Positions 881 through 24,800 of a stretch of 64,000 nucleotides of DNA are shown here, piece by piece; the stretch's first letter is position 1, and every line of letters begins with the position of its first letter. The DNA is from Oculina patagonica (lineage: Eukaryota). The stretch spans positions 11,470,001-11,534,000 of the forward strand of contig NC_135761.1 in assembly GCF_052425735.1 (NCBI RefSeq), written 5' to 3'. Below the pieces are notes generated by a model, which made no database searches, was not told the DNA's origin, and saw nothing but the letters and a program-made list of their open reading frames with translations. A program made the position numbers and the translations under genes.

Positions 881-3108
881 TATTGTCAATAGGAAATCTT
901 GTGTCGGAAACCCTAACCACTGAGTCGAAAGCCACTAATTCCTGTCAAAACAGCGGCGAATGTTGGGAGATATAAAACTGACATCTTAATTCAACTCGTC
1001 GTTGCCAAAGTTTTCCTAATGTTCCATTATTATATAATAGCTGACTGGAAGAACCACAACAACAAATAAACTCAGTCACTTGACCTAAATGTTTCAATAA
1101 AGATTTACGTGACATAGACTATTGGCGATATGATGAAGTATTTTAGCCGAGTGCGCCGTCAAGAAATTCAAATGCTGACACGAAGTTTACCCACAAAAAC
1201 AAAAGACGGGATGTACGTAACAAAAAAAAACAATTACTCTCTTCCGTTTTTCTGCGTATAACGCGACCGCCGAACGCATATTTGGGTGCTGTTAGTCATG
1301 CAGAGAGAAGCGCGTCACATCCCAGATCACTACATACCTTTCAATACGTGGTGTTTCCCTCGTAAAAACTGGCTCGTTTCCACATAACTCTACCATATTG
1401 TCACCACTATCTTCGCGTTGCGTCTCGCTTCATTTTCCGTGGATCTTTATGGATGATCTAAACACAACACAGCTAAATTATCATTATGAAAATGCCCCGT
1501 GCTTGTCAATATTCATTAGCACGGTCCACCGACTCCAGGCCCTAAAAGGGGGTAACGTGACATTTATTAATAGAGCCAAGACGTTTTAAATTGTTTATGT
1601 CTGTTTATGATTAGCCGTGTCAAAGTTGATCCTTTCAAAGGGAGGGCACCATACTAATTAGCTTTTATTATAAAATCTACGATTTCCAATCACGGATAGC
1701 AAACCACAGTGAAAATAAGTCCATACCGTTCAAATCTGCCGAAATCGCAACGTGGTGTACCACCGAAAGGGAGAGCTAAGTTCCAGACACTCAGAGCAAT
1801 TTTCATCGCCTTTTATCGACAGGAACCAGTCAAAACAATCGCCCACCTAATCACAAATCCATTGTCTGCTCCTTGGTTTCCCCAGTAAGACAGAAAAGTT
1901 TGCTTTTTTATTGCAAATCTTACAAATACAAGAAACATGTATTTTGCATTACAGAAAGCCAATAAAACGACCTTGATCAAGATATTGTGACCTTCGCTTG
2001 AAAACCCGGCCAAGCGATGAATATTCGTGGCAGTTGTGCAGCCGGGCTGTCTATCAAAGCTAGATAACGTTCTTGTTATGAAGAGAAAGTAAACAATTGG
2101 AGCTGAGAAGAGCGGAACTCACGCCCATTATAAGCAGCAATATCAAAGTGTTTTTCAATGCCACCCAACAGACTACCAACGCCTAACTCTTTCAGTGAAA
2201 TACCTATTCGTAAAGTCCTATAATCACCTCGGATTTTCAGACTAGAGTGTGTGTGACTTTTCGTTTGTAAAATGTCATTTTGAACTTTCGTGATGGGAGA
2301 AATGTCCTCCTATTGTTTTCGGAGTGCTAAAAATCGACAAAAGGACACACTTTGTTTTTTTAGTGTCCTTTGTCCAATACATTGAACCGCAAACAAGACG
2401 AGTTTAGAAATTTAGAAGTTCAGTATCTATTCAATAAAATGAAACGCAAAGCAATCGAGGAAAAAATCAGGAAGGGCCAGTCACGGCCCGTCTTTAACTT
2501 CTTCAGCCCGGAGAGGATACAGTTTCGGAACAGACTTTTTTCACGGTTTTTCGACGCCATCTTGGATGGAATGAGAACACGTTAAAATTACACGGCATTT
2601 TGACGATCCCCCCAAACGATCAGTTCGTCCGATTTCCAATATATTCCCGCTGGAGTTTGCCATATTTAAAAAAGAGCAATTTGAAATTTGAAATTTCATT
2701 TATAGCAAATAAACTAGTGATAAGTATTGTGACGAGAGAAGGAATGGCCAGACGTGTGTAAGCGTTTATCTATTAGACGTTTCTGAATGTAATCTGAATA
2801 CCGTTACAGCTCTACTACTAAGCCTCCTTCATCTCTTTTAAGTCCCCCGCTCTCAGCTCTAATAACAGAAATGGCCCCCCTCTCCCTCTGGAAGATTTTT
2901 ATAAGCCCCCTCCCCATATGGTAAATCACAACAATATTACATGGAAACAAACCACTATTGTTAATATTTTGTGAAATATTTTACCAAACAGCACTAAAAC
3001 ATTAAAAAAAAAAAAACACTACATTTCTTTTTAAGGTAGCCTAACTGATATATGATTTGAAATACGTCCACCGTCTTTAATAAGTCCCCCTCTCTATTAA
3101 GTCTATTT

Positions 3109-3226
3109 AGGGGAGCAGGGAGGCGCAGGGGGAGCCCGCCTCCCACCAATGTGTCCGGGTTCGATTCCGGCCAGGTACCATATGTGGGTTGCGTTTGTTG
3201 TTGGTTCTCGTCCTTGCTCCCAGGGT
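3109..3226 (+). mobile_element. 5' fragment of tRNA-derived SINE (same family as 13396-13703)
   Basis: gggagcagggaggcgcag...gcctcccaccaatgtgtccgggttcgattcc...atatgtgggttgcgtttgttgttggttctcgtccttgctcc matches the 13.4 kb copy. It ends just before a small TAGCCTG..CAGGCTA element (3238-3323). Confidence 0.8.
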
Positions 3227-5294
3227 CTTATTAGAGTTAGCCTGCGTTGCAGCCGGACGTGTCACTACTGAAAACCTCGGTAAAGACTATACCAGGGTTT
3301 TTAGTTCGTCTGCGACGCAGGCTAATCTAAATCGGCGTTGTCAAAATCCAATGAATGTTGATGGAAGTTACATACTGAAATTAAAAGATCCGTATCATTC
3401 GTATGCATTGGCCACAAAAAAATGGTAAAATATTCAGTCTGAACTCTCTTAGTTGAAGATTTCACTTCACATTCTCAGAGTTTTCAACAACGCTCCAGAG
3501 AAAAAAAGTGCCACGCGACCATCTCACGTTTTATCAAGTTTTTTTAAGTTTTTGTTTTTCTTCTTGCTCAGCTCGTCCATGGAGCACTCGTAAAAAAGTT
3601 GAACTGGAAAACGACCGCAGCTGTTTTTGTGTTACAAACGAAAACGGGTGGAAGTTGGAGAGCAAATTGTCACGGGGGGCTGGGTCAAGCTTGCTTCGCG
3701 CCTTGCGCCACGTGCGTTCGAGGCTCCCAGAACAAAGCGAAAGCGCGGCAGACGAAAAGGGAAAGAAAGACTGAGCGGCTCTCATTTTTCTCGCTCTCGT
3801 TCGCCCTTTCACCCGTTTTCCCCACAATACCTGAACCTGGAACAGGTTAAATTTATTAAAGAGGAACTGATGGGAGTTAAGTCGACGTTTAAGGCTCCAA
3901 CAGATGTAGCAAACCACAAGTTTCTTTAGAACTGTGGAACTGACTTCAGGTCAACCGATCAAAATTTCCATAGATTTACCAACCTCGTTCTAGATTTACC
4001 CGATAAACTAATCCTTCTTAATTAATGCTGCTTTTATCTCTATTAACCAACCCATGACAACAATATTCGCATTAATTGGACGGAAATTGGTTATGTTGCC
4101 AGTAATTTCTTTTTCTTATGATCTGTATATATGGTCAAATATGTTACGCCAAAATATTTATAGATTCTTGCTATATTCTACCGAAATATTTGACCTTTAG
4201 CGATTATACACACTTATCTATAACGCTCAGTGCGCAAGGAACATGCCGAAGACTAAGAGTAGGCTATTAAATGGAAATTTAGCCAGTAATGTGAAGGATA
4301 GGAAGCGAACAATAAACAGACAAAAATTCGAAAAAAATCCTCGCAATGTTTAAAAGTCAGCCATATTCTGGTTTCACGTGGAAACATGCCGACCAAAAGA
4401 CTGCAACGGAAGCTATCATATATACTAAAATCGTAAGCGGCGCAAACTATATCAAAGAGCTAAGAACTATAAAAAAGTCACGGGGATTTCGCAGATTTTT
4501 TATTTTAACTGTTCTGAAATATGTGGTAGGCAACTTTACCCATGCATGAGAAACATTTATCTTTGAACATTTGACTGAAGGTATAAAGTAACCTTTATTT
4601 GGGGATAGAAATCAAACTTCGAGATCAGCTATAGTATATATATAGTATCGATTTTTTTGAAGGCACGTGGAACTTGACAACTTAAAAACGTTGGCTAACG
4701 TTTTCAAATTGCAATCCATTCAATCCAAGCCATCCGTAGCCAAACGCACTTTTAAACAGTTTTAGTACTCTAAAATAGCAAATTATGTATGTAAGTTTAA
4801 TTTTCGTACTTCTTTTTGAACTCACGGAATTTGTAAACTTTATTCACTTACATTGACAATGGCGTCATGAAGACACCGAACGGTCGGATTATATCGCTTA
4901 TTTTTACATATTTATGTATAACAAAATCATTATTGATAAAAATAGCAATTGTTAATAAAAATGGACCATTATTTTTAAGTTCCTACGACACAAACATAAA
5001 TTTTGGCTTTTCAAAAATCTGTTGAAATCCTTGACACAGTCAGAAGTTTCTAGTCCAAGACAGCCAAGCCGCAGTGACTCTAGTTCTGAGCTTATCGGCA
5101 AGCACCGGTACATGTCTGTGCCTTCTGTATGTGCAATTTAAAAAGTTGTTAGCAAGAAGGCCTGTGACCATGACAACATAAAACTTGGCACTTGAAACAG
5201 TTTATGCTGATGAGCCGTATATCTCTGAGGGATCAGATGTGGCCATTTCCTGATGTGCAAATATTTATGTCGTGTTTCTACTGGTCGGTGATTA

Positions 5295-5470
5295 CAGTGG
5301 AACCTCGATTTAACGAACCTCTATATAACGAAGTCCTCGATATAACGAACGATATTTTTCGTCCCAGTAATAGCAAATTATATGGAAAAGAACCTCGATA
5401 TAACGAAACCTCGATATAGCGAACACATTTTGCCAGTCCCTTGGCCCTTCGTTATATCGAGGTTCCACTG
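5295..5470. mobile_element. Tc1/mariner(pogo)-type MITE
   Basis: TIR CAGTGGAACCTCGAT / ATCGAGGTTCCACTG, TA on both sides, internal ACCTCGATATAACGAA repeats. Confidence 0.85.
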
Positions 5471-5571
5471 TACCCAGAGAGCCAGGGTATTAAGTGAGCT
5501 CCTGGCGAGCATGCACAATTGGTTTTTCTAGGGAGGTCGATGGGAATTCTCTCACAGGGCCGAGTCAGTGG

Positions 5572-6310
5572 CATAGGCGTACGAGGCGGGGGGGCGAGGG
5601 GGGCTGCAGCCCCCCCAGTGCCGAAATTTTTCGGGCAAAATGCTTAGAATTCGGGCAACAAGCCTGGAGAAAAAATAGAAAATAAGCCGACAATTCTCAA
5701 CATTACGTTCAAAATGAATTACATCGACAGAAAAAGTATTGAAAATAAAGCAAACTTTGTGGTTCAAAAGTCCAAATTTCTCTTTCATTTGCTTTCGTTT
5801 CCTCTCGCAATTTGCTACAATCATGTTCGAGATTTCTAGCAAATTCAGCGTGGCCCCTCAGTTTGATTCAGTCGCTATCAGCTATTCCATAGCTTAAGCG
5901 TTTGCTCGCGGTGGGTCCAGCTTTGCTCTTTTTGACTCAAATATTTAGTTCTCAGGGCTAACTCAAAACTTTCAACGAAAGGTTTCAACCTATTCATCCT
6001 TGAATTTTTCACACGCTTTTGTGTAACTTTCAAGTGGGGGAAAAACAATACAAATTGGCTCCCCAAAAAAACTTTAAGTTTAGTTGAACAAGAGCGGATG
6101 AATAAAATATTTCCAAACTAAAGGGTTTCAGTGCATTGACACCTTCGGGCAACGCCACGAAACTAATTTAAGAACTAAGCAAGAAGGCAAGGTTTACACG
6201 ACTTTGTTGTTCATTTTATATTCCTCTTTATTCAGCTTTCAATGCATGTTTTTTTTTTCGGGCAATAAGGTCTCCGCCCTCCCAGGTCCGAAGGTGCCCG
6301 TACGCCTATG
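5572..6310. mobile_element. Non-autonomous hAT/P-like DNA transposon
   Basis: TIR CATAGGCGTACG / CGTACGCCTATG; perfect 8-bp TSD GTCAGTGG (5564-5571, 6311-6318). Confidence 0.9.
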
Positions 6311-7156: not shown

Positions 7157-10100
7157 ATGACTTCTGCGTCCTTTTTAAAGAGCAAAGCTTTTAAAGAAAG
7201 AGAAGAAAATGCAAGGGAAAAGGTGCGGCAAGCGGCCAAACAAGATCTGGTAGCGGATTTATCCAGGTACTGTACTTATCCCAATGAATAAAAATTAATG
7301 TTCAATATCGAGTTGTGAGCTGAGATTTTGAGGCGAAAATAGTTAGGTAGGTTAAAATGATTAAAGGCCTGATCGACACAGTTTGAGATAGCTTTTCTGC
7401 TAAGAAACAACTTCCCAAAAGACTTACAGTGTATCTACTATTGAATCTCACTGATTATTAAATGATTCATGAATCTATAAAATAAAGGAAGCATGTCAAC
7501 CGAAGCATAATACAAACATTATGTAGAACTGGTGAATTGGATCGTGGAGATGAAAATGTGATAGACGTAAATCAATAAACAACACAGAGAGGAGAACTAC
7601 TTCCATAATTTTGATCAACATTACCTTTTAGTTCAGCAGTGGTGGACAAATTCATCCTTTCAAACAAATTCTGTTGGCTGATTAATAATTCAGTCAGCCA
7701 AGTGTTTTCTTGAATTTGAATGAGAAAATGTGACCTTATATTAATATTTATGTAGTAACTTGTCTTGCTTTGACTTGTAGGCTTTATGGAGATACAACCT
7801 TCAGTGATGTGTCATTTATAGTGAGCAAGTCAGAGTTTCAAGCTCATACAGTTGTCCTTAGAGCCAGAGCCCCAAATTTCTGTCGACAATTTCTTCCAAG
7901 GCATGCTTCACCCGTTGCTGTCCAAACATGCATCCAGATAAATGGATTAGAAGCCGCTGAGTTTGAGGCATTTCTGAGGTAAAGAAGATGTTTAGTTACA
8001 GTATAAAACCTTGAGTATTTTACCAGTTTATAGGAATGATATTGTTATCTAATGATCATGCTGTATGGTAAGTCCGCAAATTTATGTGTTATTTCCACAA
8101 ATGCTAAATACCTTGCAAATAAGCAGGGCTGTCATAAAGGGCCCTGACCCGTAATACCTGTTATGGCTGAGTCCACTCAATGTTAAGGGTGAAGATGTAG
8201 ATTGGTGTTATGTTACACTTGCATACAGAGCGAAATGCTATGGGTGATAATTTCAATGTAACAGCTGCTTGAAAACTTAATAACAGCCCTGATATGCAGT
8301 GCTCGACACTACGCAGACACAGCCCAGGACAGAATTCAGTGCGGACTCCACGCCAGACAGAGACAATCACACACTCAAACTGGGAGCCCGCCCATAGGAC
8401 GCCAGCTGAGAGAGCGCGGACCACTCGAACGGAGACGACCCGCCTGACGACGGAGACCCGCCGCCCGACACCAAAGGGACTGGGAGAGAGAAGTGGAACC
8501 GCCAGGGCGAGGGATGAGAGGACAACACAGAGAGAGAAGAAGGGATCACGGGACGAGGGATGAAGTCGGTGCGAGGGAAGAGAGGTGGACCAACAAAAGC
8601 GAGAAGGACACTTGGCTATAGGGGGGGGGGTGGGGCAGTGATTGTCCTTGTGGGCAGTGATTATTTGTACCTCGCCATGCCAGATCCAAAAGTTAGTGTC
8701 GAGCACTGATATGGATGGTTCTTGTCAAGGGGTGTTTGAGTTTTTTTTTTTTTTTTCCTTTGTGGCCCAGGGGGGGTACTTGCAGTATACATGACGGGGG
8801 GGGGTCCGACGGAGCTTCATATTGCGAACCCAAAAAAATACATGAGCCTGAAATTTTACACCCAAAATAATACCTGACATCAAAATTTTCTACCCCAAAA
8901 AGTACAAGACCTAGCACCTCTATACTGATTTATTCAACAAAACAGACTTTCAGACCTAAAAAAATATATGACAGATCTCGTTACCCAAAAAAATACCGAG
9001 GGTGTAAATTTTCAACCGAAAAAAATACGTCGGACCTCCCCGTCATGTATACTACAAGTACCCCCCCCCCCCTGGGCTTTGTGGAAATCTGGCTTTCTCA
9101 AAACTAACTAGTTTTATTATATTAAAACTACCATGTTTCAGACAGCAGTCTATTCTTAATTATCATTCTATTCAGATATTTATTACCAAAAATGATGAAT
9201 TTTATTCTGTTGTTTCTGAAAAGGTCTGCTTATACTGAAGATGACTTTAAGGACTATAATGAATCAAGATATCCGTGGACAAAGCAGAAAAATTTGTCAT
9301 GCTCAGTGGATAAAATCAATCATGTTATTTGTGGAAGTGAATTCAAAGGAGACAGTACAAGTTTTCAGAATGATGTAGATGGAATTTGCAAGTCTTGCTT
9401 TACCACCCAGTCTGGTTCTACTGTGCCAGATGATAGCGTTACATTAACTGGACCAATTGACCCCGTAGAAACTGGTCAAGATGACGTTATACATACTGGC
9501 ACTCATTCATGCTGTGACGTGGAAAGTAACAATTCAGAAATTGCCAGCAGTGATGCCGTTGGCTTGGAAAAGGAAGATAGGGCAGATCCTCGGCAAAATG
9601 ATAATAAAGAATTTGCAACTGATATTTCTGCTCATGTAGTTGACACATTTAATAATACAGAACTCATTGCCCAAGATTCAAGTCATCTTCGTGCTGATAG
9701 TCATAGTAACATGGTCCAACAGAATGATAATTCACTTGTAACCCATCAGTCCCAAGACCAAACAAATCAGAACAAAACCAATTCAGCCAATGGACTTGAT
9801 TCTATGGTTGTTCAAGAAACTAGAACTGTACTTGACTGTCCTCGAGGTGGTTGTGAATTTGAAACATGTAAACCACATTCAAGTTGTGGTTTTAATGGTC
9901 TGCCTGAAGGATTAGGAGCAGCAGATGCAACAACTTCTGAAATGACTACGACTGACGACAAAATTGTTCAAAATGGTTTCAAATCAAAGCAAGGTTATAA
10001 TTACTGCAATTACCTAAATGTTACTATTGTTAGCGGCTACTAATTTTAGCGAATTTAGCGAGTTGGGAAAAAATCGCTAAATTTAGTACTCACTAAAATC

Positions 10101-16100: not shown

Positions 16101-19100
16101 GACCTGACAGAACTTTGTTTGTGGAATCTTTTATATATAACTTTATTTTTGAGCTAGTAGATATCTAGTTTACAAGTCCTATATCACATCGTGGATATAA
16201 CTTTTTCTTAGCAAAAACATTTCTGGATGGCAAGCCGAGTACATGTACTTTTTAATATCAGCTACTGAGAAACTGATTGACTGACTGACTGACTGACTGA
16301 CTGACTTGCGGCTGACTGACTGACTGACTGACTGACTGACTGACTGACTGACGGTGATTGACTGATTGTCTGACTGACTTACTGACTAAATGACTGTCTG
16401 ATTGACTCACTGTCTGACCGAGTTACCCACTGACTGACTGACTGACTGACTGAGTGATGAGTACTTGTTGACTGACTGATGGATGGACAGACGGACGGAT
16501 GGACAGACTGACTGTCTGACTGAGAGATTGATTAAATAATACTGACAAACTGACTCTCTGTTTGACTGACTGATAGACTGTTAATTAATCAATAATTAAT
16601 TGCCTGAATACTTTGTATCGCTTGCTTTATACTCTGATCACTTTAACTATTGATAGCAAAATCAGTGAACAGTATTGAGTTTGCTACAGTACCATATTTC
16701 CTCTCTTTCCCTCAGTAGCTTAGTTGACGTATTTTAGTTGGTATTTATCTTAATTTTTTTTAGGGAGTGGGCTGGTCAGTGCCTGTCCTGGAGAAAATTC
16801 TTTCTGCGGTAAAAAGAAATTTTACCATTGAAAACTGCTGTGACCAGCTAAGGGCCATTCTCAAGTTAAAAAGGATCATTAATCTTAAGACCCAAGAGGA
16901 AGGCGAAGAGTGCTACCCAGAGGTAGGGAGTATTTTCTCAATGGCCCAATTTTTATTATTACAGACAACTGAATTATTTGTTCGTATAGTGTGATTGTCC
17001 GGGGGGGGGGGGGGGGTACAATTTTAGAGATGCCTAGATGCAATTTGGAATGGCGGCATAAGTCCTTTTCTTTCATCGCCACCAGGATCTGGAACTCAAT
17101 ACCGCCATTTGTAAGGGACGCTAACGATCATTTAACTTTTAAACGATTACTAGGTAAATATTTTAGGTTTTAATGTTTTTAATGGTTTTAATATTTTTAA
17201 CTCTTTTAGGTGCCTATTATTATATTATACATTTATTATATTATTATACATATTTATTATATTATACATATTTACATATTTACATAGATAATTATATAAT
17301 TTTTTTTTCCTTTTATACAATTTTGCGTTCGCGCACACATTTTAACGAGCGCTTGCGCTCCTAGGTGTCGCGTGGGTAAATAAAGTATTGTGTATTGTTG
17401 TTGTTGTTTAGAGTGGCACTGAAAACAGAAGTCTTTTTGAGAGTCAAGTGAAAAGTTGCTTGTCAGTTGATAATGTTATAAGTAATATGTCAAACATAAG
17501 AGGCAGTGTTTCATCGGGATATCCAAACACCGAGAGGAGAGTTGAAAATGCAATGCGCAATTTTTGACGAAATTTGAGGTGTTTGATTAAAAAGAGAAAG
17601 AAAATCGAAAATATCTATGCTAATAGAGACCGGGTATCCAAACGTGCTTTACGGTTACTATTTTCTTTGTTTAATCTTGATGAATGTTTAATGAGTTTGA
17701 GAAGCCTGGTCAAACAACCGTTAGTTCTTTTCTGAACGACCCTTACCCGAACGATTGCACTATACAAGCTACTGATACTCTTGGGCTTAAACCATTTACT
17801 GTACTTTGACTTGATTATTCTCAGGCGGCTAATTCATCGCCAGTTTAGTTCAGTACATGAACTCGGTAACAAAGTTGTACAAAAGAAGTATTTTTTCAAA
17901 TATGGTGTTCGTCTCTCAACAAAAAAGTTAAACAAAACAAACAAAAAATATCAAAAGTTGACATCTGTTTAGGGTAAATTTTTCAGTCCACAAGCTCACT
18001 GTATTTGCCTTATGTTTTGTTTTGTTTCTCTCTCAGGAGGTAGTTGATCTCGTGGTCAATTTACACAATGACTGTGTCAAGTTCATAAGATCGAACCTTT
18101 TTAAAGTTACTCGCTCAGAGGGATGGAAACGATTAAAGATTGTCACTCAACGGGAAGTAAAGGAAGGTAATGTCTGGTATAAACTACAGTAACTTGACAC
18201 ATTACAAGAAATTCACCAAACATGTAAGGGTGAAAATGCATATGAAAGGTAGCCTCCAATGCACTTGCCACGTGTTCCTCCCAAGGAAGATCACGTGACG
18301 AGCCCAAAAAAGCGTCTGCATAAGAGGCTATGTGCTAGGTGCATGGTGTGGGACATCCGAATGGTAAATATAAAGCTTGTAAAAATATAGTCCATCCAGT
18401 TTTGAAACGCAAAGTACTCTTACAGAAAACAAGCCCCCAAACCGTAAATGATATTCTTTATATGAGTATCACAGGCTCACCGATGTCTAAACGTTCTTAA
18501 ATTCAAGGTTTTTTGCCTAAAATGCTCCCGCGATCTTTTTCGAAGTTTTTTGGCAATCCTAGCTGGAATCTCTTCAGCTATTGCTGAAAACTGCTAGCTC
18601 AAAGTTTACAAAAAAGAGTTTTGCTGCGTAGCACTCAATAGTTACAATAAGTGTTCTTGGAGTGTTCTTGGAGTGCAAAGAGAGTTTTTTTAAAACACAG
18701 ACGTTTCGGGGAAACCCCTTCATCAGTGTAAATATGATGTCTAAAAGGAACGTTTGGGCTTACGTTACGTGCGCGTCGCTTAAAAATAAACAGAGCGCGA
18801 GATTGAGCGCGCTTAGCGCACGTTGACAAAATTTAAGGTCATTGCCCTATATCATTGCGCCCTACTGCGAGAATTTTACGGGTATTTGGCGCGCGCGCGC
18901 GAACATCAACAAATGGCGGCTTTCATGTGGAGTCCGCGAGAGAAAATTGTCACTTTCTCCCAAACGAGCCGGACCATCATCATATTTTTGTGAGGATATC
19001 CATGAAACAGATCATGTGAAAAATATATCGCTAAAAGGGACGCAACGAGGAAAAAGGGAACGTCTTCCCGTGTGACCCATATTAGTTCCCAAGTACGGAG

Positions 19101-21085
19101 GTAATTTGTCAGTTCTATTTCAGGGAATGACCTTAAATGAACGTCAGAATATTTTTGTCTGAGATTTCACATTTTAATTCTCAGACAAAAATAGTCTGAC
19201 GTTCATTTAAATTTTGTAAACGTGCGCTGAGCGCGCGCGCAATTTCGCGCTCTGTTTATTTTTAAACGACGCGCACGCAAGACATTTAACGTAAGCCCAA
19301 GCGTTCCTTTATTAGACATCATATATATGTACACTGATGAAGCGTTTTCCCCGAAACGTCTTTTTTTTAAAAAAAAAAAACTCTCTATGAACTCCAAGAA
19401 CACTTATTGTAGCTCAAAGTTTAACTGATTGTTAATGGTTCAAGCTATTTTGTGTTAATCCAATAGGTGCCGTGTTTAGTGGCCTCGGGGATTCAAGAGA
19501 TCGTTGTAGCGGAAAAAGAAGCGCACCACCTTCAGCGCAGGTAAGTTTAATTTAAGTGTCGTTGAAGACTGGAGAAGAAACAAAATAAATGACTACTGAA
19601 AATAACATTCGAAAGTTATATGCTGCAGTTTGAGTTGCTCGGCTCTTTTCAGTGGGTTTTAACGTGCACAGTTCTCCAACCATTCAAAGCGAAGCTGTTG
19701 TCTTGTTAGCCAATCAAATGAGAAAACCAACCAACACGTGATTTGGATTACGCAACTTTTCCCGCGCCAGCAATCTGTCACGTGCTTTTTCTTCGCATTT
19801 TTGATTGGTTAATTACGCCGTTTGTGGTCATGGAAGTTGGCTTTGTTATTGCTTCGCATTTATTTTTTAGGATTTTTATTTCAAAACTGCTGTATAACCA
19901 AAATGTATTTTTTCTTTTATTTTTTTTTTTTCGTGAAAGGCTTCTAGCAGGCCACCAACCAGAAGTGCTTTGCAACGTGTTGGAACTGAGTCTCGCGCTA
20001 GAGGACTGGGGAGAGGAAACGCCGCAGCTGGCGGACATCTTAACAGAAGCTCCCAGCAAGAAAGGCCTTCCTCGGCTAGGAGCTACCCGGGTAGGACTGG
20101 TCCTGTGCCTTCAAGTACGCGGCCCACCTCAGGACGGCCCTCATCTGCCCAGAGCGGTGTAATGTCGGGCCGTGGAAAAACGCCTTCAGCTTCAAAGAGC
20201 GCCGCTTCTGAAAAGAGACCTTTGTCAACCCGGGCGCCTGTAGTTCCAGGTAGTTCAAGATTGTCTTCTTCATTTTCGAGAGACTCAGCCAAAATGTCAT
20301 CTGCTCAGAGTTCTTCCGCGTTAGGACGTGGGAAAACATTGTCATCAAATGCACCTTCTGCTCAAAGATCTGGTCAGAATACAAGAAACATTCCTCCGGC
20401 GGCATCTAACAATAAACGAAGCTCTTTAGCAGCTCAAGAAAACACTACTGGGAGGCCTTTATCTGCTGCCAGCTCTTCTGGTGCTATAAAAAAGGCCCCA
20501 GCAGCTTCCAGGCCTCCTCTACCGACTGGTAATGGCAACAGTAACTTGTCAAATAGATTCACAAAAGAAAAGCCCCTTTCTGTTGTGGGTTCTCGCGTAC
20601 CATCGAAAAAAGCACCTACCGGTTCTAAAGCCGTGCCTGTCACAAACTCGCGGCAATGTCCTACTAAAGAATCCAAGGCAGCTACGGCTTTATGTAAGCC
20701 AAACAAGGCGTCTTCGTCAACAGATAGCAAAGGAACGGGCGCGAGAAAGGAACTCTTTAAAAACACAGCTAAAGAATTAGATGCCAGTTCTGGACTTGAA
20801 AGTAAATTGGTTACCAGCTTGATAGAAGAAAGTCAGTCAAGTGAAAATGATAGCAGTAGAGTTAGAGTAACAGATGAAACCTTGGACAGCGAAAATGAGA
20901 ATAATTCACAAGCTGGTGCACAGGCCAACAGCCTTGACCGCGAGGAGGCTGCTCCTGTATCCACAAGCACAGAAAACTTGCAGGAAGTTTCATTACTATT
21001 AAGTGAAGTGGTTGACGAGGTCTGTTCCAAATCACAGTGTGATGATTGTCCGGATAACGCCAAGTTCAATGATTCACTAGACTAA
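7157..21085 (+). CDS. BTBD8: BTBD8-like protein (two BTB domains, BACK-like helical region, long S/P/K/R-rich C-terminal tail), ~1134 aa
   Basis: Exons 7157-7266, 7781-7978, 9224-9993, 11544-11611, 11846-11949, 12237-12326, 12862-12945, 13882-13978, 14520-14608, 15557-15659, 15812-15994, 16764-16922, 18037-18166, 19467-19540, 19940-21085; GT-AG with consistent phases (exon 4 donor uncertain). Motifs SDVSF..FQAHTVVLRARAP, LGQDLMQLF..KAHKAILCARSNYFSAML.GDW.E, DMYGLEGLRE..CHMFHKP and CIKWMAKHF..FASLP resemble vertebrate BTBD8 as I recall it. Confidence 0.85.
8125..8291. mobile_element. hAT-like MITE (CAGGGCTGTCAT TIR), copy 1
   Basis: CAGGGCTGTCATAA...TAATAACAGCCCTG; homologous to 11987-12166 in the opposite orientation. 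No clear TSD. Confidence 0.7.
8297..8708. mobile_element. MITE with 15-bp TIR and 5-bp direct flanks; anomalous GA-rich interior
   Basis: TIR CAGTGCTCGACACTA / TAGTGTCGAGCACTG; ATATG on both sides (8292-8296, 8709-8713). Confidence 0.75.
8766..9076. mobile_element. MITE with CCCAG(G)n TACT termini and 8-bp TSD
   Basis: CCCAGGGGGGGGTACTTGCAGTATACATGACGGGG / CCCCGTCATGTATACTACAAGTACCCCCCCCCCCCTGGG; TSD CTTTGTGG (8758-8765, 9077-9084). Confidence 0.9.
10013..10422. mobile_element. Degenerate TA-flanked MITE with homopolymer-rich interior
   Basis: Left ATTGTTAGCGGCTACTAATTTTAGCG and right TTGCTAAAATTAATAGCCCCTAACAAT are inverted repeats. Confidence 0.6.
10742..11236. mobile_element. TA-flanked MITE (AAATTTCGCG repeats) nested in an older repeat
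   Basis: TA|CCTAGTTATTGTTACTT ... AAGTAACAATAAGG|TA; the flanks rejoin into a repeat homologous to 41855-42100. Confidence 0.75.
11987..12166. mobile_element. hAT-like MITE (CAGGGCTGTCAT TIR), copy 2
   Basis: CAGGGCTGTCATTA...TAATGACATCCCTA; inverted homolog of 8125-8291. Confidence 0.7.
12557..12785 (+). mobile_element. CORE/MIR-like tRNA SINE, degenerate
   Basis: tggcctaatgg..gctggactcc head; gcacaagacactc..cacccaggtgtatatgggtaccggcaaa core shared with 30945-31233. Confidence 0.7.
13396..13703 (+). mobile_element. Full-length tRNA-derived SINE
   Basis: A box TGGCGCAGTGG, B box GGTTCGATTCC, body tactccgggttctccggttttcctccctccacaaaaaccaacac, (TTTA)n tail. Confidence 0.85.
14914..15253 (+). 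mobile_element. tRNA-derived SINE with V-SINE-like core and LINE-like 3' tail
   Basis: TAGCTCAGTTGG and GGTTCGAACCC boxes; core aggacgataaaccgtaggtcc...ttaaagaacccac..gaaaagagtaggg; tail agcgcatttga..aatgcgctatataaat(CATTAT)n. Confidence 0.75.
16272..16580. repeat. (GACT)n microsatellite with (GACG/GATG) variants
   Basis: Long imperfect GACT tandem array read directly. Confidence 0.95.
17020..17408 (+). mobile_element. 5'-truncated CR1/L2-type LINE 3' end
   Basis: Encodes ..KSFSFIATRIWNSIPPFVRDANDHLTFKRLLGKYF*, a typical CR1/L2 ORF2 C-terminus, followed by a 3' hairpin, AATAAA and a (TTG)n tail. Confidence 0.7.
18695..18730 (-). ncRNA. Minimal type I hammerhead ribozyme (intact)
   Basis: Minus strand reads UACA CUGAUGA A GGGG UUU CCCC GAAAC GUC UGUG: core, stem II, ACGU-type stem III and stem I all present. 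Confidence 0.75.
18837..19132. mobile_element. Kolobok-like MITE nested in the palindrome
   Basis: TTAA|GGTCATTGCC ... GGGAATGACC|TTAA. Confidence 0.8.
19331..19365 (+). ncRNA. Hammerhead ribozyme copy, disrupted
   Basis: ACA CUGAUGA AGCG UUUU CCCC GAAAC GUC UUUUU: core intact, but stem II and stem I are mismatched relative to the minus-strand copy. Confidence 0.6.
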
Positions 21086-21879: not shown

Positions 21880-24800
21880 TCAGCATATAATGCACATATG
21901 GCCGCGGCTGCCCCTGCTTTTGGGTTTTTGTTCGTTCGTAGACTGGAAGGATAAAAAACAGCATCGTACACCAGTTGTGGGACGCGGAAGTGAAGGCATG
22001 CGCTGCCATACACGAGTTGCCACGTCGAAGCACTCAACGGAATTCAAACTGATCCCGTCCCATCCCCCGACGAGGTAGATTTTGTTGTTGAATACGCACG
22101 AGCCCGCGTTGGATCTGGGCGTGCCCATGGGAGCGACCTGCGTCCACTCAAGCGTCGTAAAGTTGTAGCACTCTACGGATCTGAGAGTGTCGTTTCCATC
22201 GTAGCCGCCCAGAACGTACATTTCGTCTTCTGTAACAACTGCGCTTGGAAATGAGCGTCTGTCACGCATGGGTTGGACCTCTGTTGAACTCCACGTGTCC
22301 CTGTTGAAATGAAAGTAAAGGCTGTGACGATTGAAACAAAAAAAATTGCGGGAGCAATTATAAATTTCAGATTTTGGAAATGTTTCCCCGTTTGCCTGCT
22401 GTACACAACTTTTATTGCGAACGCAAAGTCTGCTTCTGAGAAGCAAAGAAAGGGTCAGTTGATTTTTTTTTTCAGAAACACTTCCGCAACAAGTTTCACT
22501 GAAAATAATGTTGACCAGATTCCAGGCTCGCGCGGGGCTTCACATTCCCTTCTTGTGCATTGCGCATCCTTTACGGCACTATTTCCCGTGTGAAATTTTC
22601 TTAGCTTGCCTCAGCAAAAAGCAAACAGTTGGTATTTTCCTGGATGTAGGGCTAATGCTCGACATCTAAGCTGCACAAATTAAAAATTTCGATTACTATG
22701 GCCATCAAATTAGAGCGTTCACTTGCCTACTGTGGCGTTACAACAAAGCGACATTTGGCTAAAAAAATGTAGTGTTATGTGCTTTAAAAAGAGGCGAGAA
22801 AGAACACTCCTCGAAACGTCTTTTCGACGCCTTTCCAAGACGACGCGCTTGACATTTTGCTCCTTTTTATAATGTGCCAAGCGCCGAAGAGAGTTCCCCC
22901 CCCCCGCCCTTTCCTTAACAAATGAGTGTGAACGACGCTACTTCTTCAACAAATCACAAGCAAGAACAACTAGCTCGAAATTAGGTTACCGTATGCGCGA
23001 TTTCCCGCGCTTGAAAGTTTTATGTTTTATTTGCAGCGAGCTCTGATTGGCTCATTGCATCAGTCTTGTTAGCTGTGATTGGTCAGATGTCAGTACTTCA
23101 ATTATGATGTTACTACAATCATCTCAAAACCGCCCTAAACAGATCGTATTACCTTGTGGTATCATAACACTCCACTGTGTTCAGAATACTCGATCCATCA
23201 TGGCCGCCAATGACGTAAATGGACTTCCCATGAGCCACTGCGCAGATGCACCTTCTTCTGGTCGGCATTGGAGCCTTCGCACGCCATCTTCAAGAAAGTT
23301 AACTAAATCAATTATCGATACATTTCTTGGTATCTTAAGTTCGGGCCAAACGAGGATGAGAGTTGATGAGAGTTGACTCTCGTGAGAATTTTCATCAACT
23401 CTCATTGACTATCATCAACTCGGGCCAAACGAGAACGGAGTCCGTCAAACTCTCACTGACTCTAATGAAAAATTTGAGCAGTTCAAAGGATCGATGAGTG
23501 CGCACGAGAGTTCCATGCCAAACGAGAACGAGAGTTTAGAACTCTCATCAACTCTCATCTTCGTTTGGCCCGGGCTTAAGACATAATTTGGCTTTGCCTA
23601 AAAAGCCTATCCAATCGAGCAGATCTTTCAAACATTTTTATGTTCTCACGTGTAGTCACTATGTGTAGTCTGACTAAAGTTATTTCTTTTTTGGGGGGGG
23701 GGGGGCTATGTGCGCATGCGTAGCGTAGCCATTATGCAGGAGAAACTGTAAGGCTTTAGTTTTTCAAAATAGGGGGAAATTTTAAGAAAAATGTAATTTT
23801 AATTTTGGGAGAGTGTCTCAACAATTTTGCTTGTTGTTGTAGTTGCAGTATAGAAGACGCATTCACGCCACTGTTAGTTCATTTAATTACTGTTTAATTA
23901 GAGATCCCACAGATTTCTTTTGTTTCCTTTGACCTATTTTTCAATTACCTGCCAGATTGAAAGCCAAAGCATTCCAGGGTATTCAGCGTGTTTTGTCCGT
24001 CATAGCCACCGACAATATAAACATGACCATCTACCTCGACGGATCCATGTTTGCTTCTCCGTGACAGCATATTAGGCAGGTTATGCCACTCCTTCTGTCG
24101 TACATCATAGCGCTGAGCTGGGAACAAACATAAGAGCAAACGCAACATTTTTTTAACGTCAATTAAAAAACTAAAAACTGCTAGTTACTGTTAAGGCTAC
24201 ATGATAATCATATGCCCAAGAAGCTGAACGAGCCAGTTCTTGAGTATTATCAAGATAAACTTGTCGCGGTCCATTTGGCGAATCTATAAATTGATTGGTT
24301 GAGCTATCGGTGACTATCAATCGCGCTTTCTTATATTCAAAGTATCTTCAAGATTCAAAAAGAAAAATCAAAGTCAAATAAAATAGTTTTGTGTGATAAA
24401 CTATAAGAAACGTCAGCTAACTCAATTGACAACTCGCTTCCGCTTACCGATGCAAGCGTATCAACGTTGGTAACATTTTTCCAACTAAAGAAAACCTCTA
24501 TTACACTTTTGCTCCAAAGCTGCTTTTCATGCATTCAAATAGGTTCATATTTAAAGGCCTGGAAAAACGGAGGTGTTATTACTGTCACAAGTATTCGCAA
24601 GTTGAACTAGCGTAGACCTGCGTTGGGTTGCTAAACGCACACGCAAGTTTACTTGCAACTAAAGTACACGTAAGTTAGCAAAAAAGAAGCCATTTCAAGG
24701 CTACTGCGAGCGCCGCAATTCAGTACTTGAAGTAAACAACAAGTACTTATGTTGACTTGCTTTAGGAGGCCTAATGGTAAAAAAAACCTTGCTTCCACAT

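Follow-up and report, generated by a model that had tools for sequence, protein, structure and literature searches.

The window analysed here covers 64,000 nucleotides of Oculina patagonica (NC_135761.1), and all coordinates given without a prefix are positions in it. Inside an intron of a plus-strand gene it holds an insert of 829 bases (18595-19423), made up of two inverted arms that each carry a hammerhead ribozyme motif and belong to a family of Penelope-like elements (PLEs). Very probably, the insert is one old double insertion of heavily 5'-truncated copies of the 3' untranslated region (3'UTR) of a canonical endonuclease-bearing PLE. The host gene has a BTB domain further upstream on the same strand (7770-7982, Pfam E 1.5e-7). 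Upstream of the insert lies a BACK-like exon (18037-18167, plus strand; weak BACK_BPM_SPOP match, E 0.0065), preceded by a pyrimidine tract and AG and followed by GTAATG; downstream lies another plus-strand exon (19468-19541, with boundaries ...ccaatag/GTGCC...GCGCAG/gtaagt). Only 44 nt (19424-19467) separate the right end of the insertion from the 3' splice site of that exon, which places it within the likely branch-point region; the splice signals of the exon are still good.

The insert is bracketed by an exact 14-nt direct repeat (TAGCTCAAAGTTTA, at 18595-18608 and 19410-19423), a target-site duplication that abuts the ends of the PLE family homology on both sides. The inverted arms measure approximately 230 to 260 bp each and are 90-96% complementary over the aligned blocks (18640-18846 against 19123-19414). 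On the left lies the minus-strand copy, which starts with a 36-nt tail (18609-18644, minus strand) aligning to the family terminal ...taac(a/t)attgagtgctacgcagcaaaactcttttt and continues with the distal part of the 3'UTR (18645-18836), where it aligns with the other arm, has small deletions and is 82-87% identical to family copies. The proximal, 5'-most part of this copy (19137-19167, minus strand) is the reverse complement of 19176-19210 and is separated from the rest by a nested miniature inverted-repeat transposable element (MITE, 18837-19132). An 8-nt apex (19168-19175) follows, set by the spacing between the hairpin arms, and then the plus-strand copy (19176-19409), which lacks the tail and, according to the family alignment, begins just after the position of the parental stop codon.

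The hairpin at 19133-19210 has arms of 35 nt that are 94% complementary and 8 nt apart, and it is the apex, or inversion junction, of the palindrome. Removing the MITE and one TTAA rejoins the left arm with 19137-19167 and restores a palindrome of approximately 505 bp around the same 8 nt. With the apex and one misaligned end discounted, the arms have diverged by approximately 7% plus 6 indels, and they have in common several variants absent from the fetched family copies (AAGCCC, CAAAAATA and GACGTTC). The insert has no open reading frame (ORF). The left arm also holds an 11-bp tandem duplication at 18651-18672 (GTGTTCTTGGA twice), where the family instead duplicates another 11 bp (AACACTTATTG twice), and the right arm stops at the first unit of the 11-bp repeat.

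The nested element is a TTAA-specific non-autonomous DNA transposon that is unrelated to the PLE. It forms a 296-bp repeat inside the left arm, flanked by TTAA (18833-18836 and 19133-19136) and ending in 13-bp terminal inverted repeats (GGTCATTGCCCTG / CAGGGCAATGACC); a genome search with its centre alone gave at least 573 first-look candidates. Nine other aligned copies match the window copy only over 18833-18970 and 19109-19136. TTAA borders are present in 10/10 copies (the window copy and the nine others), and the flanks are unrelated. A fixed TTAA together with a fixed 13-bp inverted repeat is what characterizes a DNA transposon with terminal inverted repeats. Typical copies measure approximately 455 bp against 296 bp for the window copy, whose inner part (approximately 18971-19108) is unlike theirs. 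Since the MITE fills most of the space between the arms, the hairpin is simply the inversion junction and no separate module. Other readings of this region were rejected: the centre (18847-19122) shows no family similarity by tblastn or blastn, as a 5' continuation of the PLE coding for GIY-YIG would, and the centre-only search that located the 296-bp MITE excludes the hairpin both as a nested mini-MITE and as family sequence deleted from the left arm. Rfam microRNA-hairpin matches on the palindrome apex are generic and sub-threshold (42 bits against a gathering score of 83). The later insertion of the MITE provides a relative time stamp for the locus.

The string CTGATGA..GAAACGTC occurs exactly twice in the window, at 18700-18726 on the minus strand and at 19334-19360 on the plus strand, against an expectation of 0.01 in shuffles. 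Each arm thereby has one minimal type I hammerhead with the core CUGAUGA..GAAACGUC. The minus copy (18697-18729) reads ACA CUGAUGA A GGGG UUU CCCC GAAACGUC UGU, with both helices (GGGG/CCCC and ACA/UGU) paired and zero mismatches to the commonest form in the family. In the plus copy (19331-19363), GCGU replaces GGGG in helix II and UUU replaces UGU on the 3' strand of helix I. These three mismatches, all of which arose on the plus arm when judged against family copies, abolish two of the four pairs in helix II and the central one in helix I, and the helices of this copy no longer pair throughout. The conserved core (C3-A9, G12-A14, A15.1/U16.1 and a cleavable H17) is intact in both copies (CUGAUGA ... 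GAAA-CG-UC). As the host gene is on the plus strand, the decayed hammerhead is the sense copy. An earlier note on this DNA had described the 14-bp repeat and the inverted arms around a hairpin, a CUGAUGA motif in each arm on opposite strands, perfect stems in the minus copy, and a plus copy with an intact core and two broken stems, all of which is borne out. Its placement of the insert in an intron, with the decayed copy in the pre-mRNA of a putative BTBD8 gene, agrees with an intron of a plus-strand BTB gene whose flanking exons have splice signals.

Searching the own genome with the 33-nt motif (at most 3 mismatches) yields 123 copies, 61 forward and 62 reverse, against 0 for the reversed pattern. 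The commonest form, with 40 of the 123 genomic copies, is identical to the minus copy. The looser pattern CTGATGA-N8-24-CGAAACGTC gives 940 occurrences genome-wide versus 3 in the reversed control. Both window copies read CUGAUGA-A-G...C-GAAA-CG-U, as do the minimal hammerheads of PLEs, for which Cervera & de la Pena (PMC4209133) list four traits that are all found in the window motif: an unpaired base between positions 9 and 10.1 (here an extra A), a G10.1-C11.1 pair, a palindromic 15.2-16.2 (here ACGU), and sequence families with compensatory changes. With the palindromic ACGU, helix III is possible only between two molecules (PMC4209133). Covariation is visible in a sister subfamily of the same genome, which has AGA/UCU in place of ACA/UGU, a double compensatory change in helix I. 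This subfamily (AGA...UCU, helix II GGGG/UCCC) was found at C3:1930135, C3:1972955, C3:2013008, C3:2029824, C1:14011909 and C1:14917678, with four of the copies following each other on one chromosome at intervals of 17-43 kb. As helix II, other families have GGGAC/GUCCC, GAGAC/GUCUC, GGGC/GCCC or GGCU/AGCC.

Rfam reports no hammerhead family over 17500-20500 even at E<=10, which we take as the expected outcome for motifs without helix III. Minimum free energy folding of the isolated motifs returns non-catalytic alternative pairings and is uninformative on activity, and metagenome contigs scanned for the exact pattern of the plus copy gave no match. Published minimal hammerheads of PLEs show no detectable cleavage as single copies and slow cleavage as dimers (PMC4209133); in PMC6765202, dimer cleavage is attributed to Lunse et al. 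2017. The PLE protein assists hammerhead cleavage (PMC11167929), and a coral genome with thousands of minimal PLE-type hammerheads has already been reported (PMC7229834). The hammerhead in each arm is that of the family and belongs to the life cycle of the parent element.

The arm family is dispersed in the 529-Mb genome, with at least 847 first-look candidates, and its aligned copies extend upstream beyond the arm sequence. The larger loci L031-L033 each consist of an inverted pair, whose arms reach approximately 800 bp at 98% identity and hold ORF pieces with reverse transcriptase (RT) and GIY-YIG motifs. A near-full-length copy (L059) contains an ORF of 741 aa with the motifs ADKGG, LPKIHK..PGRPIVS, AMGTKMGP and RYIDD, a CX2C linker and, at its C terminus, a GIY-YIG block (GVTYAITC..YIGKTGRRL..R..EH). 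Pfam matches GIY-YIG in this ORF with E 0.0023, below its cutoff, and the nearest ESM Atlas clusters carry RVT_1, HTH_animal and GIY-YIG (score 0.97). In the Protein Data Bank, the ORF sequence had matches at chance level only. This copy is the partner GIY-YIG/RT Penelope element whose existence the earlier note had proposed to check.

The frame kept by other copies ends in ...GMNIDLKF and a stop codon, and the window arms start just past that stop. They align to the 3'UTR downstream of the L059 ORF, where both the ORF end and the 3'UTR are readable. Because the arms start right after the stop codon, the alignments identify them as the bare 3'UTR of an autonomous, endonuclease-bearing RT/GIY-YIG PLE family. 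Within G000:C9:372500-379500, the L059 sequence at 2523-4748 plus 4856-5803 is the nearest long parent copy. The last approximately 16 residues of its ORF are outside the frame kept by other copies, its hammerhead is split by an insertion of approximately 660 bp, and no upstream direct repeat was seen within 2.5 kb. Another PLE family (helix II GGGAC/GUCCC) has the classical build at C1:11534894-11537937, a stretch that includes C1:11535190-11535546: two same-strand hammerheads 3 kb apart enclose a 922-aa open frame.

The build of the window insert recurs elsewhere in the genome. Nine other loci represent eight separate dimers (L031, L033, L035, L036/L037, L038/L039, L040, L041 and L042), with L036/L037 and L038/L039, which have the same insertion and the same flanks, each counted once; other palindromic copies bounded by target-site duplications, for which the earlier note had suggested a genome search, do therefore exist. 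All eight have the tail on one arm and end the other arm near ...cttattg. Their target-site duplications are approximately 11-17 bp long, compared to 14 bp in the window. Arm lengths in the family dimers range from approximately 30 to 800 bp, the longest reaching into the ORF. Among the matches listed, motif pairs within 3 kb are (-,+) in 19/19 cases, that is, head-to-head with the 3' ends outward, and none is tail-to-tail or tandem. The direct form of the PLE terminal repeats (pseudo long terminal repeats, pLTRs) is seen in a sister family, whose motifs at C1:11534894 and C1:11537908 lie on the same strand at a distance of 3 kb.

These features are known marks of PLEs. An adjacent inverted 5'-truncated copy, a 30-40-bp tail that is often found at one end only and hammerheads in the pLTRs have been published (PMC8557442), a one-sided tail extension is described in PMC8557442 and PMC11167929, and PLEs are known to occur in inverted arrangement (PMC8557442, PMC4209133, PMC6765202). 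The inverted pLTR form, the tail at one end and the target-site duplication of variable length are all found here. The arms thus are, as the earlier note had recognized, Penelope-like sequence in a known inverted form, with a minimal type I hammerhead in which palindromic ACGU stands for helix III.

Spacings from motif to motif cluster at approximately 51-64, 84-140 and 324-338 nt, which hints at preferred inversion points; in the window the motifs are 634 nt apart, which becomes 334 nt once the MITE is taken out. A short dimer, with 64 nt from motif start to motif start, is present in either orientation at four loci on three chromosomes with 97-99% identity (L060 1361-1647, L061 1481-1796, L062 1274-1589 and L063 1347-1663). 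It has arm-specific variants, CCCGG in one arm and UCUGG in the other, and adjoins GGTCACAAATGTAATAA-type tandem repeats. Pairs of these loci have 1-1.35 kb in common, and the dimer seems to have been copied passively within a larger repeat.

The following course of events would account for the locus. One integration event would have placed two 3'UTR copies head-to-head, with their 3' ends outward, and duplicated 14 bp of the target. Both strands of a staggered endonuclease cut may have primed reverse transcription. Purified Anolis PLE protein nicks and extends both target strands in vitro, and two RT start sites a tail-length apart have been described (PMC11167929); the tail-plus and tail-minus ends would reflect two such alternative start sites. 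The 19/19 outward pairs among the matches listed agree with a PLE protein that nicks and extends both target strands. Alternatively, the first cDNA may have snapped back; near-symmetric arms and an apex of 8 nt would then be accounted for. After insertion the arms diverged by approximately 7%, the TTAA-specific MITE landed in the left arm, and the plus hammerhead would have taken three of the approximately 10 substitutions of the plus arm by chance. Lacking an ORF and any known means of moving, the insert is a fossil and was dead on arrival.

Several points weigh against the interpretation as a single PLE double insertion. Pfam RVT_1 gives no score on the L059 ORF, and the RT membership of the parent rests on motifs recognized by eye and on the Atlas lead, next to a GIY-YIG match below the Pfam cutoff. 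Direct (tandem) pLTRs of the arm family are absent among the matches listed. No empty, uninserted allele was found in the assembly, so that the claim of a single event relies on the target-site duplication and on the likeness to the other dimers. Finally, palindromes are prone to assembly error, and the letters rest on the assembly.

The different fates of the two hammerheads deserve a closer look. Each difference between the arms was assigned to its arm of origin by the majority base over the fetched copies of the approximately 240-nt non-coding arm, which gives the minus arm approximately 7 substitutions and the plus arm approximately 10. Of these, 0 in the minus copy and 3 in the plus copy fall within the 33-nt motif (Fisher p 0.21-0.23). 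Under a uniform rate, the plus arm would have at least 3 changes with a probability of 0.17, and the minus arm 0 with a probability of 0.36. Another family dimer has the same 0/3 split; other pairs show 0/0, 1/1 or similar counts. The asymmetry is indistinguishable from chance and fits neutral decay. Folding the whole insert as host-sense RNA predicts a long hairpin (-384 kcal/mol) in which 29/33 motif positions are paired with the other arm, so that the hammerhead would probably be masked in host-sense RNA, intact or not. The main molecular consequence of the insert is most likely this predicted intronic double-stranded RNA hairpin, and no host function is indicated. A Kelch-repeat gene (21880-24148, minus strand) and the BTB gene converge; the final exon of the Kelch-repeat gene ends in ...HMCIIC and is a Pfam Kelch_1 match (E 5e-33).

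The earlier note had regarded the insert as a distinct, self-standing non-coding foldback ribozyme retroelement whose sense hammerhead would have been disabled by selection against cutting of the host pre-mRNA. We see very little chance of this, and neither part of the proposal is supported. The arms are simply the 3'UTR of an autonomous PLE, and their length differs between loci. The short dimer at four loci does show, by its arm-specific variants, that some dimers get copied, but it lies inside the larger repeats of 1-1.35 kb and fits passive copying. In favour of selection, all three changes of the sense copy are in helices while the antisense copy has none, and according to a preprint animal retrozymes are depleted from introns and exons (10.64898/2026.07.22.740005). 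However, the split of 0 versus 3 is not significant, and changes in helices are to be expected since helices make up most of the motif. Moreover, minimal hammerheads need two copies to cut, and do so slowly, whereas each transcript strand here holds one motif, which in the host-sense RNA is predicted to be largely buried in the duplex between the arms. A broader form of the idea, namely that across the approximately 940 minimal hammerheads of the genome helix pairing decays faster in the intronic sense copies than in the antisense copies they are joined to in a dimer, is in our judgement very unlikely; the window locus alone cannot show such faster decay. If it were true, there would for the first time be evidence of weak ribozymes cleaving host pre-mRNAs in vivo often enough for counter-selection. 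Head-to-head dimers offer a natural paired design for studying selection on sense-strand ribozymes, with each dimer as its own control.

Two independent back-to-back PLE insertions, for instance a second copy homing into the first, might also produce such a pair. PLEs show a tendency to land within or beside existing copies (PMC6765202), and a divergence of approximately 7% with 6 indels would suit arms of separate origin. Nonetheless, the pair as a whole is enclosed by one exact 14-bp duplication, with no further duplication inside it, both arms are truncated at almost the same position, 8 nt from each other, and the subfamily variants are common to both. Together with the single orientation of 19/19 pairs among the matches listed, whose arms are often 98% identical, this makes separate insertions highly improbable. 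Even less credit can be given to a foldback or terminal-inverted-repeat DNA transposon that simply includes hammerhead-like strings. Long inverted termini and a flanking direct repeat would be its hallmarks, but it is contradicted by duplications of approximately 11-17 bp, unequal termini with a one-sided tail and variable arm length, and in the longer copies the arms run into the RT/GIY-YIG ORF. The true MITE at 18837-19132 behaves otherwise, with its fixed TTAA and fixed 13-bp inverted repeat. There is equally scant likelihood that the assembly or its consensus is at fault, in the sense that the hammerhead copies are really identical or that the palindrome was collapsed or misjoined. Tandem and inverted PLE structures are known to upset assemblies (PMC8557442). 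Yet many sites and indels outside the motif distinguish the two arms, and the MITE is present in one arm only, unlike what collapse or mirroring would give; several public runs, coral runs and a coral metagenome among them, also contain approximately half of the words sampled from 17900-20300, or more, although this evidence is weak and not site-specific.

Summarizing, a double insertion of truncated PLE 3'UTR copies remains the preferred explanation. The locus is of little import alone, as the hammerheads, inverted double insertions and one-sided tails of PLEs have already been published. Its modest value is that of a clean and datable example, with a legible target-site duplication, tail-plus and tail-minus ends and a near-symmetric inversion point.

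Compared to known systems, the insert is closest to the canonical endonuclease-bearing (EN+) PLEs such as Penelope/Poseidon, Neptune and Nematis (Craig et al. 2021, PMC8557442; Frangieh et al. 2024, PMC11167929). As in these elements, the parent ORF has an RT followed by a C-terminal GIY-YIG, a hammerhead lies in the terminal repeat region, 5' truncation is frequent, an inverted 5'-truncated copy can lie adjacent, a tail of 30-40 bp is found at one end only, and target-site duplications are long and variable. Nothing essential differs; the window copy is an extreme truncation that retains the 3'UTR only. The ribozyme likewise resembles the minimal type I hammerheads of PLEs (PMC4209133), with their CUGAUGA and GAAA cores, G10.1-C11.1 pair, ACGU for helix III and short helix I, and with many sequence families per genome that differ by compensatory changes. 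Its helix II has 4 bp, whereas that of the Schistosoma and Drosophila PLE hammerheads has 6-8 bp.

Small non-coding hammerhead repeats in corals are also known from the metazoan non-LTR retrozymes, including those of Acropora millepora (Cervera & de la Pena 2020, PMC7229834), which presumably rely on PLEs and have long target-site duplications too. Those, however, are head-to-tail tandem units of 220-240 bp with canonical hammerheads that have loop-loop contacts, act fast and give circular RNAs (PMC7229834), in contrast to the head-to-head window arms with one minimal motif per strand. The window has no tandem unit from which a monomer could be released. Neither does the outer element look like a foldback or terminal-inverted-repeat DNA transposon, given its unequal ends and the family's duplications of approximately 11-17 bp. 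A final parallel is twin priming of L1, in which priming on both target strands leaves an inverted 5' segment within one target-site duplication. An inverted retroelement segment within a single target-site duplication is likewise seen here. In L1, however, it is another region of the RNA, further upstream, that supplies the inverted piece, whereas in the window both arms are the same 3'-terminal segment.

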